DNA of 63,863 nt, filler included, from Neoconidiobolus thromboides FSU 785 (GCA_025603075.1; 4 parts of 4 records of this genome joined end to end with filler, not necessarily neighbours in it), one strand, 5' to 3'; shown: positions 44,780-57,206, counted from the whole stretch's first letter. The notes: a model not told the origin generated them from the letters alone. Numbers and translations: made by a program.

Positions 44780-44890
44780 TTTATATCTTGAAAAAATTAT
44801 ATTTATTTTATTACTATTAGTAATTAAATTGTTAATTTTATTCATTTGTAAATAAAAATCTCAAATTTTAAAATCAACCAATTAATATTT

Positions 44891-44984
44891 GGGGATGTTT
44901 TTTTTGATTTCATTATTTTTCCATTTTTTAAGCGCTATTTGAGTGGAAAGATCGTTAGTAAAATTCTTAAAAAAAAACATCCTC
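44891..44984 (+). mobile_element. MITE family 1, TSD ATTT
   Basis: attt-ggggatg...acatcctc-attt. Confidence 0.9.
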
Positions 44985-45668
44985 ATTTCCTATTTTACTT
45001 AATACTTTAAAGCTGTTTTTCTGATATAGAAGATTTTTAAAATGTTTATTGGTTACATTTTTTCATAATGCTCAGTGAAAAAAATTAGTTGATATTTGAA
45101 ATATTATTTATAAATTTTTTTGAACATATAATATGAAAAGTTTTAGAATTTAAAGAAATTAGCCATGTCTGTTTATGTATTAATTTTTATAAATTTTTTA
45201 AACGAAAGCTTTAAGTATTAAACCAATTAAAGAGTTTTTTATATAATAAATCATATTTTATTATTTTATTATTTTATTATTTTTTAAATATAAGACACCA
45301 AACTATATCAATAAAGTTTATTTATTATAATAGATTAGATTTAATAAATCTAGCTTTATTTTTATTTTTATAAGGTTTGAAATTATTATATAGCTTCTAT
45401 TGTTTAATTTTTAATAGCTTTATTAAATATGGGGATATATTTTTTTGTTTAAGGATTTTATTAATTATTTTTGAACAACTATATTAAATTATGTTTATAT
45501 TAAATTCAGAATTTCTATATCTATTATAAGAAAAAGTTATAGCTGATAATAATGCTACTTGTTAGTTTTTATTTTTTATTTTTTATTTTTTATTTTTTTT
45601 GAAGTATTAATTTTACATATTATTTGGTTGAGTTTATTATTATCAATAATAAACTTTAATATATATAT

Positions 45669-45768
45669 GGGGATGTTTTTTTTGGCTTCATCATTTTTTA
45701 TATCTTTTAAGCACTGCTTTAAGCGGAAAAATTATTAATAAAACTATTAAACATAAAAATACATCACT
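45669..45768 (+). mobile_element. MITE family 1
   Basis: atat-ggggatg...acatcact-atat; central AGCACT. Confidence 0.85.
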
Positions 45769-45927
45769 ATATATTATATCTACTAAACACTTGATAAGAT
45801 TATTTTAAACATTTAATAGAAATAACGTAAAGCATATAATTAAAAAAATTAGTTATCTAGAAAAATAAGTCTTTTAAATTAAATTTTCTATTTAATTTCA
45901 AGCTTTTTTAAATTTAACTAATTATAT

Positions 45928-46023
45928 GGGGGTGTTTTTTTAGTTTCATCACTTTTTCTGTCTTCTAAGCGCCATTTGAGTCGAAAAGTTATTGCAAAAT
46001 TCTTAAATACAAAATACATCCCC
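45928..46023 (+). mobile_element. MITE family 1
   Basis: atat-gggggtg...acatcccc-atat. Confidence 0.9.
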
Positions 46024-46289
46024 ATATATTAAAGGCTTGTAGATGTAAAAACTTGAAATTTAGATCAATTTTTAATTAAGTTCTGATATTAATTTAGACA
46101 TCTCTATATACCTATGTTATAAAATAATTAAGCAAATAATAAATAAACTTTAACAAAAATACCTCATGAAATGCATATACCTTTGAATAGATTTTCATCT
46201 ATTAAAGTAATAATACTAGGATAATTTTTAGATCATATTTTTTAAAGTCAAGGGTATCAAATATTTGTTAATAAATAAAATCTACTATT

Positions 46290-46350
46290 GGGGATGTATT
46301 TTTATGTTTAAAATTGGTAGTAAAACCCTCAAACAAAAAAATACATCCTC
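46290..46350. mobile_element. MITE family 1 internally deleted derivative with two right-type ends
   Basis: ggggatgtattttt...aaaatacatcctc-atat, 61 bp. Confidence 0.65.
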
Positions 46351-47164
46351 ATATGTTATTATTATTTTACTGTTGTTTTCGTTATTAAGTAAACATGATT
46401 ACTTTACTTCATTCATTACAAAATAAAGTTCACTATTGCTATCTAAGATTCAAATTGCCTTATTGACTTAGATTTATATTAAATATTATAAACCCAGACT
46501 CACCTTGATATAATCTTTAATTGACTGTTAATCAAGTTAACAATAATATCAATATAAACTACCTTTGGATTAATTTCAGCACAAATATTATCATAATTTG
46601 AAAAGCATAGAACACTAGTTAATTGAGAATTTGGTTATAGCATCTATAATAATATAATTATATAATTACAGGGTTACTAAATATTCAAATTCAAATTTTT
46701 TATAAAATTCCCGAATTTGATTAAGTTCTTTAACCTTACAACTTGAATGCATTTTATCCCTTATCTAACTAAATAGTGAAATTTGATTGGCTTCATTTTC
46801 TCATTTTTGTAAATAGATTTTTTAGGGATAATGATGAAGTTTTTATTCTTTTCATAATTTAATATACTGAATAAATATATAAATTTTTTTAAAATTCAAG
46901 AATGGTCTATATTGTATTATATTGTATTATAATAACATGTCTATAACTTAAGATAAGTTAACCTAAATAAAATTTATATTGCCGAGAACAGTATAGAATT
47001 TGTTGAAAAAAAACGCAAAACAAGCAACTTAGTATAATTAACTTGCTACTTTATTCAAGTTAAAAAGCAATTGAAAATTATAATATTTTCAAATTAAATA
47101 TATATATTTTAAACTAAAGCATTGAATTATAATATTAAAATTAGCATCACACTACTACATGTAA

Positions 47165-49627
47165 TCAAAACTGATATTCTCTTTCGTATTCGACCCCATA
47201 AAAGACGAATAATTCTTGACCTTTGAATACATCACATTCAGTAATACACTCCACTTGATTTAATTCAGAACCCTCATTAAATCTCACATTAGTAAAATCG
47301 GGATGTTCATTCATAAAATGAAAGGGGCATAGTATACCTCCATCTTTATCTTTATATAATTCATTGTTATTATCAGTAGCATCTAATATAAAATCATAGT
47401 ATTTTATGGAGTAACTACTAACATACTTATTTAACCCTTTATGCTTATCAAAATCGTATTCTGTAGTAGGAACCCCAAAATAATACCCTATGACTGTATC
47501 TTTGGGTACAAATCTTTTTGCAAATAAGCCTAGGTTAGCTCCTTTAATGGTTGAGGGTCCAACATAAAACAAATCTTTCCAATTTGTTGGTATTGGAAGC
47601 TGTTCACGATGGTGCTTTCTACTTTTAATTACAGTTTCAGCGGACGAAGTAGAAGTGAGTTGAATATCATCAATAACTTCAATTTCTGAATTGTTGAGAG
47701 AATTTACGGTCCTAATAGCTGAGTCAGAAGTGGGTTGAATATCGTTAATAGCCTTAGTCTCTTGATTATCATTATTAGAATGAATGGAATTATAAACTAG
47801 GGTAGCACTGCTTGAATGGTCTATAACTTCAAATTTAGCTGAAAAAGTAGAATTATTTATATTTAAGGTATTGACAGTTGAGGATTGTATATTAACTTGA
47901 TTTAGATTGGTTGCATTATTTATAGAAGATATAATAGGTGAGTTGTTATTATTGTTAGTTAAAGCTGAAGATTCTTCAGTTAATGGTAACGAATTAGGAA
48001 TATCATTCATAATAGATGGGCTAGTAGAAATAGGCGGATTGTTATTAAGTTGATTAGCAGCATTGTCTTCCGAAATAATAGGAGATATAACTAAAGGAGA
48101 AGGATTTGAATCTACAGCAATATTATTTATAAGAGAAGGATTGGACTCTATTGTTAAATTTTTCAAAAGTGAATTATAACTCTGTTGATAAGTTTGATTT
48201 TCCAATTTTACTTTTTTACACCTTAAATCTAAAATGATTCTATGTGGGTATTTATATTGGTTTTGTTTTAATAATTTTTTTTTCTCTTTAATTAAAAAAT
48301 TGGGTGCATTACAAGTTAAAAAATTAGGGTTTTCATCATCTGGATTTTTTCTAAAGGCTAATTTTAAACTCTTTTTTGTCTTTTTATAAATTTGTTGATA
48401 ATTTTCAGGTTCATATATTTTACCTAATACTTTAGAATATAATTGTTCATTCCATTCTTGATGTTTTTTATAAGCAAATTCAAAATTATCTAATGGAAAT
48501 ACGGGTTTAAAATGCTCAATTGGGTTACCAGGTACATTGAACTTTTCAAAAATTCCTTTGGTATTATTTGTTAAGGCACTTGAATAACTATTCTTGGGTG
48601 TCTATAAAATAATTATCAATATCTTCTATATTTTTAAATATAATAAGAGTAAATCATTTACCTTACTATTACATATCTTTATAGAACTATTTTCTTTGTT
48701 CAGTTGCTTTAAAAAACTATCAGCTGCTGCAAAGATTTGACTTCGAGTACCTTGGTTTTCAGGTATCATACTTAAGGCTTTAACTAAGAGAAAGTCGATT
48801 TTGGCCCATCTCTTTTTTTTACCCAATACACTTTTTTTACCTTTACTTTCTTCAGCTGGTTTGATACTGCCGTTATTATCTATTTCTGAGCTTTCCCTGC
48901 TATCTTCAATTAGTTTGGTATTACTACTATTGTCTGTTTCTGAAGCTTCCTTGCTTATATCACAGCCAATTAAGCCTTCAACTTCTTCTTGAATCTCTTT
49001 CTCATCTGTTTTTTCACCTTGCTTTGAAGAGGTTGAAGAAGTAGTAAGACTACCCTTTTTCTTAGATTTGGGTGAACGTTTCTTTTTTATTGGAGTTTTA
49101 GACTTAGTTTTTGAAGGAGTTACGAACGGCGTGGAATTGATTGCATTATCTATTAACATAGTTTGTTCTTGAATATTAATATTGTCATTTGATAGTATCT
49201 CAATGGTAGAAGACTGGTCCACTTTAATCGATAAAGTAGAATTGGAATCTTCACTTGATGTTTGTTTAACAGGAGATAAAAGTAACTCTTGAGATAAATT
49301 ATGATTATTTTCTGATCTAAAATTACTAATATCCGAAAAATTGACAGTTACTTCAGAACTTTTATCAGGTAATAGATTAGATGAGTTTCGAGTTGGATAT
49401 TCCACTTTAGCATCATGATAAATTTCAATAATTTCTTTTTTACTACGACCTTCAGCTAAGGAAACAGCAGCATGAGCTAACATATCTAATGGAGTGGCAA
49501 AGAACTTACTATTAAATGAAGTATTTAAACTTTTAGACATTTGGTTTATTTGGTATGGAGAGTCTGGGGATTTAGGTGGTTCGGAAGGGTTCTTATTTTT
49601 TAATACGGGTGGTGATAAATTCTGCAT
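47165..49627 (-). CDS. 800-aa protein: low-complexity N-terminus, winged-helix (HARE-HTH/H15-like) segment, C-terminal minimal SET domain
   Basis: ORFs 48626-49627 and 47165-48205 join via a 60-nt intron 48602-48661; exon 2 is open 48601-47165; SET motifs STIKGANLGLFA, HFMNEH, ELFVFYGVEY. Confidence 0.85.
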
Positions 49628-49899
49628 TTTCTTATATTACTTTCCTTTTACCTTAGTAAAAATGCAGATACAGATTAGTTTTGTTTGTTCAATTCAGAAT
49701 ATTGACCTTGTTATATTAAGGTTGGAATTCAACGTGTTGAAAAGTTTAAGTTAGAAATTTTTTTCAAATATTTTTATTAATATTTAATTAAGATAAACTT
49801 TCAAATAATCTAATCCAATCAAAAAGAAATTTTATAAACAATAATTGATTAAATAAACATTGTATTTAATAAAATACTATTAATATTATTAAGTTTGAA

Positions 49900-51558
49900 A
49901 TGTATTTAAAGACGATAAAATCATCTGTTTACCAAAATATTCGATGTTATTCAATTCAAAAGAAAAATATCAATAAGATTTGGATATTAAGTGATGGTAT
50001 TCAAGGTAACGAAAATAGAAGTATGGCTTTAGCAAATACATTTAACGCATCTACTGAGATAAACTATATAAAAACAAAACCAAGTAAGTTTATTATTACA
50101 TTATTATATTATTATTAGCAATACTGATACTATTTTTAAAAGTATTGAATAGTTTTCCTATGTTTTTAAAGAGATATTTAGTTGATTGGATTAAGTATAA
50201 TAAAAATAACCAATTTATAGGTAAATATAATGTATTAAAAATAGGGGATAAGGAATTAATTTCTTTTAGATAAATTACCATTTTATTTAGAAAACACCAA
50301 CAATATAAAACTAAACATATCCAACCAACCTGATTTAGTTATATCTTCTGGAATAGATACTGTTTTACCAAGTCTATTTTTAAGAAAAGTATTAGGACCA
50401 GCCACTTTCTTTAGTAATATAACTCTATATTAACTACAACTTGGTTAAATTAATTCTTTTTTTAGCTCATATAGGCTACCCCAATCTACCATTTAAAAAC
50501 TTTGATGGTGTAATCTTAATGAAACATGAATTACTTAAGTTAGGTAATACAGGCCATAACTATCAAATAATATAATTAATTAACAAACTAAAAAATAGCT
50601 CACCTTGGTCCTGCTTTATCCCAACAAAAAAACAGGATGACAATACCAGTAATAGTTTGCCGCAATATCACTTATTGTTTTACTAATCGCTATATTTTAG
50701 CTTGCTTTAAATAATATTCGAAATGAATTAAAATTGGAATATACCCAAATTACTAAATACTTAGATCAACGATTTATTGATAAAAAAGAAAATTCTCCAA
50801 TTGTTGCTTTTCTTATGGGAGATATACCAGCTAATTTTTCATTCTTAAATCAACATGCGGTAGAATTAGCTGAATCAATTGAAGTAATTGTTATTTTCAG
50901 ATTTTAGTTTTGGTTTAATCTCCTTTTTAGTTATTGGTAAAAAAATTCAATGCTAGAATATTGATTACTCATTCTAAAAGATCACCAGATTTTGTAATTT
51001 CATTTTTAATTTTAACTTGTATTTTGCTTACTTTATAATAACCTAGGTTAAATTACATCTTAAAACTAAATTACAAAAGTAACAATATTTAATACATCTA
51101 GAAATAAATTTAACCTATTATAGATTGATAACTGATGGTTACCCAATTTACTCATGGGAAGATGAAAAAGATGGTAAAAATCCCTATACCAGTATATTAT
51201 CCACAGCCACACATTTTGTTGTACCAGCAGGCAGTGTGAATTTAATATCTGAAGCAATCACAACAAGGTAATTGTTGAATATTTTATTAAGCTATAAAAA
51301 ATCAATTTATACTTGGTTCATAGAAAACCTGTTTATTTAGTAGGAATAGATCGTTGTAAAAATGAGCTAGCTACCTTAAGTCAACGCTTAATTTACGAAA
51401 GGTATGCACGTGCTTATAGAGTTAGTAAAAATTACAAATCTCCAGGAGATCCTTTATCTTATATTGGTGAACATCCACCATTTAATTGTTTTGATCAAGA
51501 TATTCCATCTTTAGCAAAACAACAGTTAATGGAATTAATTAATGAAAAATATACTTAA
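49900..51558 (+). CDS. ELM1: Mitochondrial fission ELM1-family protein (multi-exon)
   Basis: IWILSDGIQGNENRSMALA, PDLVISSG, FDGVILMKHE, ILITHSKRSP, NPYTSIL..GSVNLISEA..KPVY; presequence-like N-terminus. Confidence 0.85.
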
Positions 51559-51697
51559 TAGAATGATAATAAAATATAAAAGTTAAATTTAAAAAACAAA
51601 AATAAAAGACTAGTTAAATTATTATTGCTATTATTATTATCTTTATACAAAATAGGAAATTAATATTATTATATCATTAAATATAATATATTATGGT

Positions 51698-54842
<3,145 letters not shown>

Positions 54843-55181
54843 TATGTTTATTAAAACTATTGAAACGTCACTCCTTTTTTTTCTCCACTTATTTAATAAA
54901 CCCTTAAAATTGCAATTTTATTTTTGCAATTTTGAAGATGCAAAATTTACTACTTTACTATGTTGTAAAAATTTATGTACATGTGATATTAAAGTAGAAT
55001 AATATGTAAGAAAATAATAAAAGCTTCAAGTTGTATAATATCATCTAACTTTATTGAAATTGGCCCTTAAATATAACGCCTTCTGCTTCAATAACTTTTA
55101 CCAATTTAAATCACTAATTTAAACAAATAAATAATAATAAAACATCATTTTATTTTTTATTAATTCACTCATCAATTCCAA

Positions 55182-55961
55182 TTAATAAGCAAAACTAGCC
55201 TTCCATAAACCATCATTAAGATAATGAACTAAATCAACACCATTGCCTTTATTAATTTTCTTACTAAAAATAGATTTCATTAACTTTATATATATAAATT
55301 TTATATAAAAAAACTTACATATCCTCTGTTGACATTTTCGTAATACCAATAGCTAATGGATGTTTTTTGCCTTCTGCAAAGATAGCCACAATACTTTCTT
55401 CTGGTAAAGAAACTGGCATATCAGCTCCTTTGGAAGTTAAACCTGGACACATGATATTCGCTCCTGATAGTATAAATTTTATAGCTCCTTTGTCTACTTG
55501 TAACTTGGGTAGTATACTTGGGTCTGGAGTAAAAATTTAATATTAATATATATATAATGCATTTTGGTTACATTGTAATAATAATTTCATTGTTGGATAA
55601 TAAGGACCATCGTGATGATTGAAAAATTTAGCTTCGCCATTAACAGTTACAAACTCAACGTTTTCTAAAGAGCTAAAGCATAAGATGAGTAACCATTTTT
55701 TAAAATCATAAGTGGTAAAAAAAAACAAAACTTACTATTTTTGTATAATAATGGGAGCTTTTTTGGGTAAAATTTCTTCTAAGTTACCTTCAATATGTGG
55801 ATATTGTTGAATGATTTTATTACGAATAGCTCGTTGTACCGAAGATTTTACTTGGGTACGATTCTTAATATCTTCTTGGACGTCAAATCTAATGATAGAA
55901 TGTTAGAATTACTCGGTTTATTCTTCGTCATTATTGCTTTTTTTAATTACCTTTTAAACAT
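55182..55961 (-). CDS. TMA20: MCT-1/Tma20 PUA-domain translation re-initiation factor
   Basis: [45 protein letters not shown]. Confidence 0.95.
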
Positions 55962-56683
55962 TGGATAAAGTACAAGTAAGCATTTTAAATTAATTTATTT
56001 TGGTGTTTTGACAAAAAGTAAACTTAATTGCAAAAATTGAAATCATTTTTGAGCTGAGTTGCTTAATTCAAAATTTAAAGTTTGACATTGATTTAGGGAA
56101 CTGATAAAATCATAATACTTCTTGAATTCAATTATTTAATCTGCTGAATCAAGTTGCTTAATTTGAATTGGATTAATACATTACTTGTTCTTAGTTGAGT
56201 CTATTTAGTTTTGACGGAGTTTAATTTTTTTAAGATCCTTCACTTATTATTTCACTCAAATAGTACTTGAAAAATGAAAAAAGTAATAAAACTAAAACAC
56301 CTTTTAATTAAAACTAAAAAACTAACTTAATTTATTTAATATTTAACATGAGAGTTTTATTTTTTTTGTGGTTTTAATAATTGATATTAGATAAATTATC
56401 AGAATTATATAAAAAAGCAAACGTTTCTGTAATACCTAATACTTAATTTGCAATTTTTGCTAAAAAAAAAACAAGATTAAATAAAATTCAAATTAAGTTT
56501 TTAAACTTATATAGCATTGCTTTACTAGCTTTATAATTAACCATAATATAATAATCATTTAAATTGTTTATAAAATTAATTGTAGTTTTATGGTTAATTC
56601 AATTATAATTTATATAATAAATTTGACTAGTTTCAGATAAATTTATTATTGAAAGTTATTATATTTTTAAACAAAATAAATAT

Positions 56684-56778
56684 GAAGATGTTTTTTTTGA
56701 TTTTATTACTTTTTCTATTTTTTAAGTACTATTTAAATGGAAAGGTTATTAGTAAAATTCTTAAAGAAATAGATCCGC
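56684..56778 (+). mobile_element. MITE family 1 (older copy)
   Basis: atat-gaagatg...gatccgc-atat; central AGTACT. Confidence 0.78.
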
Positions 56779-56855
56779 ATATTATTAATTATAAATATAT
56801 TAAATATTTTTAGTTGGATCTTTTAATATAAATAAAGATTTTAATAAATACATAT

Positions 56856-57206
56856 AGGGATGTCCGAATTTCATTTTTTTATTCAATTTTCAAATATTTT
56901 ACATCTTAAAAACTTTACTTGAAATTCTATAAAAATAAATTCCTTATTAAAAATCGAAAGTATCCGATACAGTTTTAACTTATGTTGTTACAATTTAGCG
57001 GATTTTTTATTGAACTTAATAGAAATTCCTGGATTAGTAAAGCTTTTACTAATGTAGCCTATATATTGATATTGATTAAAGCTGTAGTATGTAAATAAAT
57101 ACATATAAAACTTTATTAAGAAAATTTTATTATTGACTGCTTTATAACTAACATTGCAAATTTACCATCAAATAAATAAATAACTTTAATGTTATAATTA
57201 TAGTAT
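56856..57206 (+). repeat. Dispersed repeat family 2, truncated by gap
   Basis: Starts atat-agggatgtccgaatt; collinear with 1066-1440. Confidence 0.6.

Follow-up and report, generated by a model that had tools for sequence, protein, structure and literature searches.

A winged-helix and SET domain protein of early-diverging fungi that probably places a methyl mark on chromatin

One spliced gene of 800 residues

The stretch of DNA analysed in this study, hereafter the window, is 63,863 nt long, and its positions 44780-57206 correspond to one contig, of 12,427 bp, from Neoconidiobolus thromboides FSU 785. This insect-pathogenic, entomophthoralean fungus has a very AT-rich genome. On the minus strand of the contig lie two open reading frames, 48626-49627(-) and 47165-48205(-), in a region where the GC content is 26-33% across the gene and 16-23% in its flanks. 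We found that both reading frames are exons of one expressed gene of 800 aa (Table 1), as had been proposed from the sequence alone.

The joint between the two exons is seen in contigs of three runs (X1, X2 and X3, from two studies), all of which omit exactly positions 48602-48661 (CT..AC on the plus strand). The RNA nature of these runs is only guessed, and it is the deletion bounded by GT..AG that shows spliced transcripts to be the source of the contigs. Record 1 of X1 (2629 nt, 0 mismatches) spans 47100-48601 and 48662-49721 with no further gap, and the transcript contig extends 5' to at least 49721 and 3' past 47100. In the 94 nt upstream of the ATG at 49627 there is no other ATG, which makes 49627 the first, and there is an in-frame stop, so the transcript encodes 800 residues. 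That the reading frames could be separate genes, or their fusion an artefact of gene modelling, is suggested by the stop codons within the 60-nt gap and by nothing more. This explanation is refuted by the spliced contigs from three runs and two studies, by the same junction in the deposited gene model, and by the domain that spans the junction and is continuous in all homologues; we consider its probability negligible.

The product is 100% identical to the database protein P0001 (K502DRAFT_345001, hypothetical protein, N. thromboides FSU 785), and either this protein or each exon separately was used as the query in our searches. The deposited model has the same junction between exon 1 and exon 2 and comes to 763 aa, because translation is set to begin at the second ATG and a further 24 bases are taken out as an intron. 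We rejected both features because the RNA-derived contig is colinear there. Exon 2 starts with TPKNSYSSALTNN (TPKNSYSS...), which forms the recognition helix. Umbelopsis isabellina has a 75-nt intron at the equivalent place, between GK and TP (L001 895-969), and about one third of the listed family representatives break at profile positions 55-58 in the profile search. The position of the intron is old.

Table 1. Features of the gene in the window (all on the minus strand)
Feature	Position	Strand	Residues	Remarks
Whole coding region	47165..49627	-	800 aa	Two exons, one intron; stop TGA 47165-47167
Exon 1	48662..49627	-	aa 1-322	322 codons, ends ...CNSK; low-complexity N-terminal region, then helices 1 and 2, which make up the winged helix's first half
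LDMLAHAA motif	49466..49489	-	aa 47-54	Resembles the Sin3-interaction pattern; in the mRNA, the RNA contig being colinear here
Lys-rich basic tract	49052..49114	-	aa 172-192	SKTKSKTPIKKKRSPKSKKKG
Winged-helix domain, probably HARE-HTH-type	48392..48820	-	aa 270-392	Interrupted by the intron; KKRWAKIDF at aa 271-279
Intron	48602..48661	-		60 nt, phase 0, GT..AG; GTAAAT...TATAG on the minus strand; immediately before the recognition helix
Recognition helix of the winged helix	48563-48601	-		TPKNSYSSALTNN
Exon 2	47165..48601	-	aa 323-800 and stop	478 codons and TGA; recognition helix, wing, C-terminal helix, Asn/Ser-rich linker and SET domain
Asn/Ser-rich low-complexity linker	47594..48202	-	aa 456-658	203 aa, with 36 N and 34 S
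SET domain with short flanks	47168..47593	-	aa 659-800	Pfam SET, profile against PDB, AlphaFold and Foldseek, family alignment

The motifs quoted in the sequence-only reading (LDMLAHAA, the basic tract, KKRWAKIDF, CPFHFMNEH, ...CNSK and the Asn/Ser linker) are all present in the protein. The basic tract SKTKSKTPIKKKRSPKSKKKG resembles a nuclear localisation signal and may act as one. The linker between the two domains ranges from 13 to 407 aa across the family. The same reading had suggested a repressor motif of the Sin3 type. The Sin3-interaction (SID) pattern is an amphipathic hydrophobic-x-x-hydrophobic-hydrophobic-x-A-A-x-x-hydrophobic, and LDMLAHAAVSL agrees with it. Only one of the 177 other family proteins compared (P0110) contains the pattern, and there it is well inside the protein and does not match the N-terminal position; we have thus dropped the Sin3-type motif as a feature of the family.

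Contigs of a second strain or a close relative provided 29 coding differences (codons numbered on the concatenated exons), of which 17 are synonymous and 12 are nonsynonymous. Ten of the 12 amino-acid changes are located at codons 82-184, in the low-complexity N-terminus. At codons 380-444, a segment that begins 13 codons before the winged helix ends and runs on into the stretch beyond it, eight differences result in no amino-acid change, and there is none among the strain differences in the SET domain. Small as this sample is, it fits with constraint acting on the structured, C-terminal portion of the protein.

A winged helix and a minimal SET domain

A conserved domain of ~120 residues is located upstream of the SET domain in all 24 homologues of the first search round. 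The AlphaFold model of this domain, built with the alignment of homologues, has a pLDDT of 83 and the topology H1-b-H2-H3-hairpin (helices 13-22, 31-48 and 60-70, hairpin 76-80/87-91); beyond this winged-helix core it has a long C-terminal helix that is specific to the family. When the model was compared with 48,161 PDB representatives, the globular domain of histone H5 ranked at the top (Z 9.1, rmsd 2.6 over 71 residues) and forkhead domains came next (Z 8.0-8.6, and up to 8.9 when Foldseek matches were re-examined, with FOXM1, FOXO1 and FOXP4 at 8.4-8.9). Z values of this size are close to the limit of a mere common arrangement of helices and strands, so they settle which fold class the domain has but not which family it belongs to. 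The likeness to forkhead and H1/H5 domains, the closest solved winged helices, is structural only. A cullin WHB domain is also found among the structural neighbours. Foldseek of the winged-helix model returned generic winged helices only, with no match at E <= 0.001, and searching the PDB sequences with the winged-helix profile gave chance matches only (e.g. an ephrin receptor, E 0.08).

The affiliation of the winged helix was judged by Pfam scans of 85 family members. HARE-HTH (PF05066) was matched in 12 of the 85, and no other Pfam family in more than two. Neither Forkhead (PF00250) nor Linker_histone H15 (PF00538) was matched in any of the 85 at E <= 10, and membership of either family was rejected at the sequence level. 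The only member above the curated HARE-HTH cut-off of 25.9 bits is P0082 from the chytrid Clydaea vesicula (28.2 bits), followed below it by P0087 (23.2 bits) and P0084 (19.9 bits) of Piptocephalis and P0012 of Nowakowskiella (18.1). The matches of these four proteins lie at model positions 2-64 of 71 and share one register, and the winged helix of the window is related to that of P0082 by BLASTP at 7e-13. The window's own domain (P0001:228-360, 230-358) was unmatched by Pfam HARE-HTH even at E 10. It is the most divergent member of the family, with many consensus residues replaced and the DWPxCFG motif lost. A language-model search ranked an NFRKB winged-helix cluster first (0.85) and the ASXL1 HARE-HTH cluster second (0.82), scores that by the tool's own calibration are leads only. 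Taken together, we consider it very probable that the domain is a divergent HARE-HTH.

HARE-HTH domains occur in ASXL1-3, plant HB1, the RNA polymerase delta subunit and restriction enzymes, and their winged-helix fold matches that of the family described here. The family differs from them in having the extra conserved C-terminal helix, of ~30 residues, and in joining its winged helix to a SET domain instead of DEUBAD/PHD, homeodomain or nuclease modules. The core of the winged helix is strongly basic, with a pI of 9.9 and a net charge of +8 in the window protein and a median pI of 9.9 and net charge of +7 in the family.

A genuine SET domain forms the C-terminus. Pfam SET (PF00856, cut-off 22.4 bits) matches aa 679-791 with 28.6 bits when exon 2 is the query and 30.4 bits with P0001. 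The motifs of the fold are GANLGLFA (aa 676-683), CPFHFMNEH (aa 747-755), GYYFG and QELFVFYG (aa 784-791, with Tyr790). The exon translations contain no cysteine cluster upstream of the SET domain and no post-SET, and the protein stops 9 residues after YG; the cysteine-rich pre-SET (or AWS) and post-SET of SUV39-, Set2- and Ash1-type enzymes are thus lacking. Neither MORN repeats nor any other domain besides SET was found by Pfam in exon 1 and P0001. The window protein was also unmatched by the PR domain (PRDM2_PR, PF21549). Several family members have matches to PRDM2_PR below threshold, the best of which is 22 bits (P0002) against a cut-off of 27.

The profile of 21 aligned family SET domains (alignment A2) was searched against the PDB. 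The best match was the LegAS4/RomA-type SET of Legionella (1.3e-10; PDB 5czy, 8sr6), followed by SETD7 (~1e-6), KMT2C (~1e-4) and Set7 of S. pombe (0.002), while SETD2 and PRDM proteins matched only at E > 0.05. The AlphaFold model of the SET domain is of moderate confidence (pLDDT 74). Foldseek of this model gave 235 PDB matches at E <= 0.001 with SET7/9 on top (E 1.5e-7, 24% identity), and the best 50 of the 235 are all SET or PR domains, including SET7/9, MLL1/3/4, LegAS4, S. pombe Set7, PRDM3 and PRC2-EZH1.

Conserved in the SET domains of the family are the GxG-like motif, the NHS Asn, the CPFHFM block, which is invariant, and the ELFVxYG Tyr; the window protein keeps them all. CPFHFMN and the acidic residue that follows are invariant or nearly so across phyla. 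In the alignment to H293/N296/H297 of SETD7, the Asn of NHS is kept (N753) and its His is replaced by Glu (E754), so that the motif reads N-E-H. Across the family this position is E or D, or R or Q in one subgroup. In canonical SET domains the His contacts the cofactor. PRDM9 and LegAS4 are also without it and yet are active, which makes its absence a weak argument against activity; it is a departure from the canonical motif all the same. In a Mucoralean subgroup (Absidia, Halteromyces and Chlamydoabsidia) the catalytic Tyr is lost, suggesting that activity is dispensable in some paralogues.

Human SETD7 (SET7/9) is matched by the family profile over the whole domain. SETD7 and the window protein are both without pre-SET and post-SET cysteine clusters, and their GxG-like motif, Tyr of FYxG and Tyr of ELxVxYG correspond. 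SETD7 differs in having N-terminal MORN repeats in place of a winged helix, N-H-S instead of N-E-H, and a longer C-terminal flank. LegAS4, whose aligned sequence also lacks the His of NHS, aligns in the SET core alone; it is a secreted bacterial protein that has ankyrin repeats but lacks a winged helix.

Most of what the sequence-only reading had said of the two domains is borne out: a winged-helix fold, its kinship to HARE-HTH (established through other family members), and a minimal SET with HFMNEH and no cysteine clusters that falls outside the canonical fungal classes, with LegAS4 and SETD7 ahead of KMT2C and SETD2 in the profile search. It had named HARE-HTH, H15 and SET as the Pfam families to look for, and of these SET was found, H15 was not, and HARE-HTH was found in relatives and not in the window's own domain. 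AlphaFold models, which it had called for, show both folds.

A family of early-diverging fungi

Searching 1.84 billion representatives exhaustively with a profile yielded a family of only 175 proteins, which provides the survey of the architecture that had been suggested. Among the 43 members with an organism name, 42 are from early-diverging fungi and none is from Dikarya. The sole non-fungal name is a transcriptome of Euglena mutabilis. Members are found in Entomophthoromycotina (Neoconidiobolus, Massospora) and other zoopagomycetes (Dimargaris, Dispira, Coemansia, Smittium, Syncephalis, Piptocephalis), in Mortierellomycota, in Mucoromycota (including Mucor, Umbelopsis, Absidia, Hesseltinella, Gongronella and Bifiguratus), in Glomeromycota (Ambispora, Geosiphon, Entrophospora), in Chytridiomycota (Nowakowskiella, Spizellomyces, Powellomyces, Clydaea, Terramyces and others) and in Gonapodya of the Monoblepharidomycota.

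The order of the domains is fixed, with the winged helix always N-terminal to SET. The SET domain is present in 82 of the 93 proteins that have a complete winged helix, and 10 of the remaining 11 are truncated models. In members from Glomeromycota, a Zn2Cys6-like cluster is located between the two domains. All members examined are annotated only as hypothetical or SET domain-containing proteins, and a survey of histone methyltransferases in Mucoromycota covers the canonical KMT1-6 classes only (PMC9963178). The pairing of the two domains defines a compact family, found in early-diverging fungal lineages.

Tethering a SET domain through a DNA-directed module is a known design. SETDB1 with its MBD and PRDM proteins with their zinc fingers are held to chromatin in this way. 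The window protein would follow the same tethering logic, but both its targeting module and its SET subfamily are different. The pairing of HARE-HTH with a SET domain like those of SET7/9 and LegAS4 is uncharacterised, although the architecture may already appear in an earlier figure.

Proposed function and its alternatives

We argue that this winged-helix and SET protein probably places a methyl mark on chromatin. The basic winged helix, of probable HARE-HTH type, most likely binds DNA via the recognition helix TPKNSYSSALTNN and the wing, and would anchor the enzyme to DNA or nucleosomes. The Asn/Ser-rich linker, which is long, disordered and flexible, could give the SET domain the reach to a nearby lysine, which it would methylate, most likely on a histone tail. 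H3K4 as the target is only guessed, from what is known of the solved enzymes that come closest. What we show is the structure of the gene and its transcription, the two folds, the family and its fixed domain order; DNA binding, catalysis and substrate we infer. On balance we regard the mechanism as a whole, that of a chromatin-directed SET lysine methyltransferase held on DNA or nucleosomes and acting on a histone tail as the likeliest target, as somewhat likely to be right.

This proposal is favoured by the single spliced transcript; by a SET domain that scores above the Pfam cut-off, whose fold model matches SET7/9, MLL3 and LegAS4 and in which the GxG-like motif, the Asn of NHS, CPFHFM and the Tyr of ELFVxYG are kept; and by a confidently modelled winged helix whose nearest solved structures, H5 and forkhead, are DNA-binding. 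It is favoured also by the HARE-HTH matches in the family, one of them above the cut-off, by the basic core, the widespread SET domain and the N-terminal winged helix of the family, and by strain differences that change amino acids mostly at the N-terminus and never in SET. It is weakened by the divergence of the window's own winged helix, which has no Pfam match and has lost DWPxCFG, by the Glu in place of the His of NHS and by the lower pLDDT of the SET model. It is also weakened in that HARE-HTH domains are not always DNA binders, since the delta subunit of bacterial RNA polymerase contacts the polymerase through its HARE-HTH.

The delta subunit is also a precedent for a different explanation, in which the enzyme methylates non-histone proteins and the winged helix is a module for protein docking and not a DNA binder. 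SETD7, the next-closest solved enzyme by profile after LegAS4, is a broad non-histone methylase, and the cullin WHB neighbour of the winged helix would fit as well. These points are countered by the strongly basic winged-helix core across the family, by best structural matches that are DNA-bound forkhead and linker-histone domains, and by the Zn2Cys6-like DNA-binding cluster of the Glomeromycota members, which fits a DNA-associated role; we consider a non-histone enzyme unlikely, though it is the strongest of the alternatives. Less likely still is a catalytically dead SET domain, with the protein serving as a scaffold or as a lysine or chromatin reader. The Glu at the His position of NHS, the end of the protein so soon after YG without a post-SET, and the loss of the catalytic Tyr in Absidia, Halteromyces and Chlamydoabsidia would be consistent with it, but it does not account well for the near-invariance of CPFHFMN and its acidic residue across phyla, nor for the Tyr of ELFVxYG and of GxYFG that are kept in the window protein, and PRDM9 and LegAS4 are active though they lack the His.

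The winged helix could also read a base modification, the obvious candidate being N6-methyladenine (6mA), with the SET domain writing a histone mark there, such as H3K4 methylation. To our knowledge, no HARE-HTH domain has been experimentally shown to read 6mA. From prokaryotic contexts, HARE-HTH domains have been predicted to tell modified DNA from unmodified, m6A among the modifications (PMC4738411). The family occurs in lineages that keep the AMT1 6mA pathway, which is lost in Dikarya (PMC12695648), and Rhizopus has less H3K4me3 once its 6mA clusters are lost (PMC12019607). On the other hand, some members belong to Chytridiomycota, Monoblepharidomycota and Glomeromycota, for which 6mA levels below 0.3%, much like those of Dikarya, are reported (PMC11258239). 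These phyla weaken the link to DNA modification, and for the same reason a simple match between the distribution of the family and high 6mA was rejected (PMC11258239). We give this coupling of modified bases to a histone mark a slim chance, the slimmest of the three functional alternatives.

Early-diverging fungi and Dikarya have different DNA-modification and chromatin marks, and recent work singles out finding 6mA readers as the main step still to be taken (PMC12695648). Should the winged helix turn out to read 6mA and so guide the SET domain, the family would supply the reader-writer link that is missing between 6mA clusters and the active chromatin of these fungi. Even without such reading, it would represent an additional, lineage-specific methyltransferase of histones or other proteins. 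The family is a cloneable candidate for the coupling of 6mA to histone marks, and it has orthologues in genetically tractable Mucorales.

Gene model at the 5' end

The deposited protein model of the gene (P0001, 763 aa) takes the second ATG, at 49539, as its start codon and treats 24 bases (GTAAGT...TTAG) as an intron, so that the residues SKFFATPL are lost and the residue that follows is altered. The RNA-derived contig, in contrast, shows no gap across positions 49466-49539 of the window and extends 94 nt upstream of the ATG at 49627. Since the transcript is colinear in this region and reaches beyond the upstream ATG, the 800-aa reading of the gene is better supported than the 763-aa model.

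The intron of the gene is in phase 0 and separates the codons for (G/S)K from those for TP, just ahead of the recognition helix, and the family member of Umbelopsis isabellina has an intron of 75 nt at the same site (positions 895-969 of its locus, L001). About a third of the representatives listed match the winged-helix profile of the family only at positions 2-55 or only at positions 58-124, and the intron at this site is probably the explanation for these partial matches.

Features in and near the gene (window positions)
Feature	Position	Strand	Remark
Phase-0 intron	48602-48661		Between (G/S)K and TP
Multi-exon cullin gene	51698-54116	-	Cullin and Cullin_Nedd8 domains
Exon with Pre-PUA domain	55543-55728	-	MCTS1/Tma20-like

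The SET domain and variant family members

When the alignment of 21 family SET domains (A2) was used as a profile against the PDB, the top sequence match was the SET domain of Legionella LegAS4/RomA (1.3e-10), which outranks all eukaryotic SET domains there. This match may bear on the eukaryotic origin of that bacterial domain.

In the Glomeromycota members from Ambispora and Geosiphon (P0006, P0007 and P0008), a Zn2Cys6-like cluster of cysteines lies after the winged helix and before the SET domain; it scores 17.2 bits with Pfam Zn_clus, under the threshold of 21. These proteins are also conserved among themselves over an N-terminal region of ∼270 residues, which the protein encoded in the window lacks. 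In a Mucoralean subgroup from Halteromyces, Chlamydoabsidia and Absidia (P0020, P0021, P0023 and P0024), R or Q replaces N and the acidic residue after FHFM(R), and the Tyr of the ELFVxYG motif is missing; these proteins are probably inactive or truncated paralogues. P0036 of Bifiguratus (1741 aa) combines the winged helix with a Pex2/Pex12 RING protein and probably results from the merging of gene models. P0145, from a transcriptome assembly labelled Euglena mutabilis, is either a contaminant or the sole non-fungal member among those seen.

Genomic neighbourhood and occurrence

From position 44780 up to the gene edge at 47165, the window holds no ORF of at least 60 aa, and GC is 16-23% over 44780-47100. 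A 263-nt contig from a fish-gut metatranscriptome (public run X9) is identical to the gene at 48302-48563, which suggests that the sample contained N. thromboides or a very close relative.
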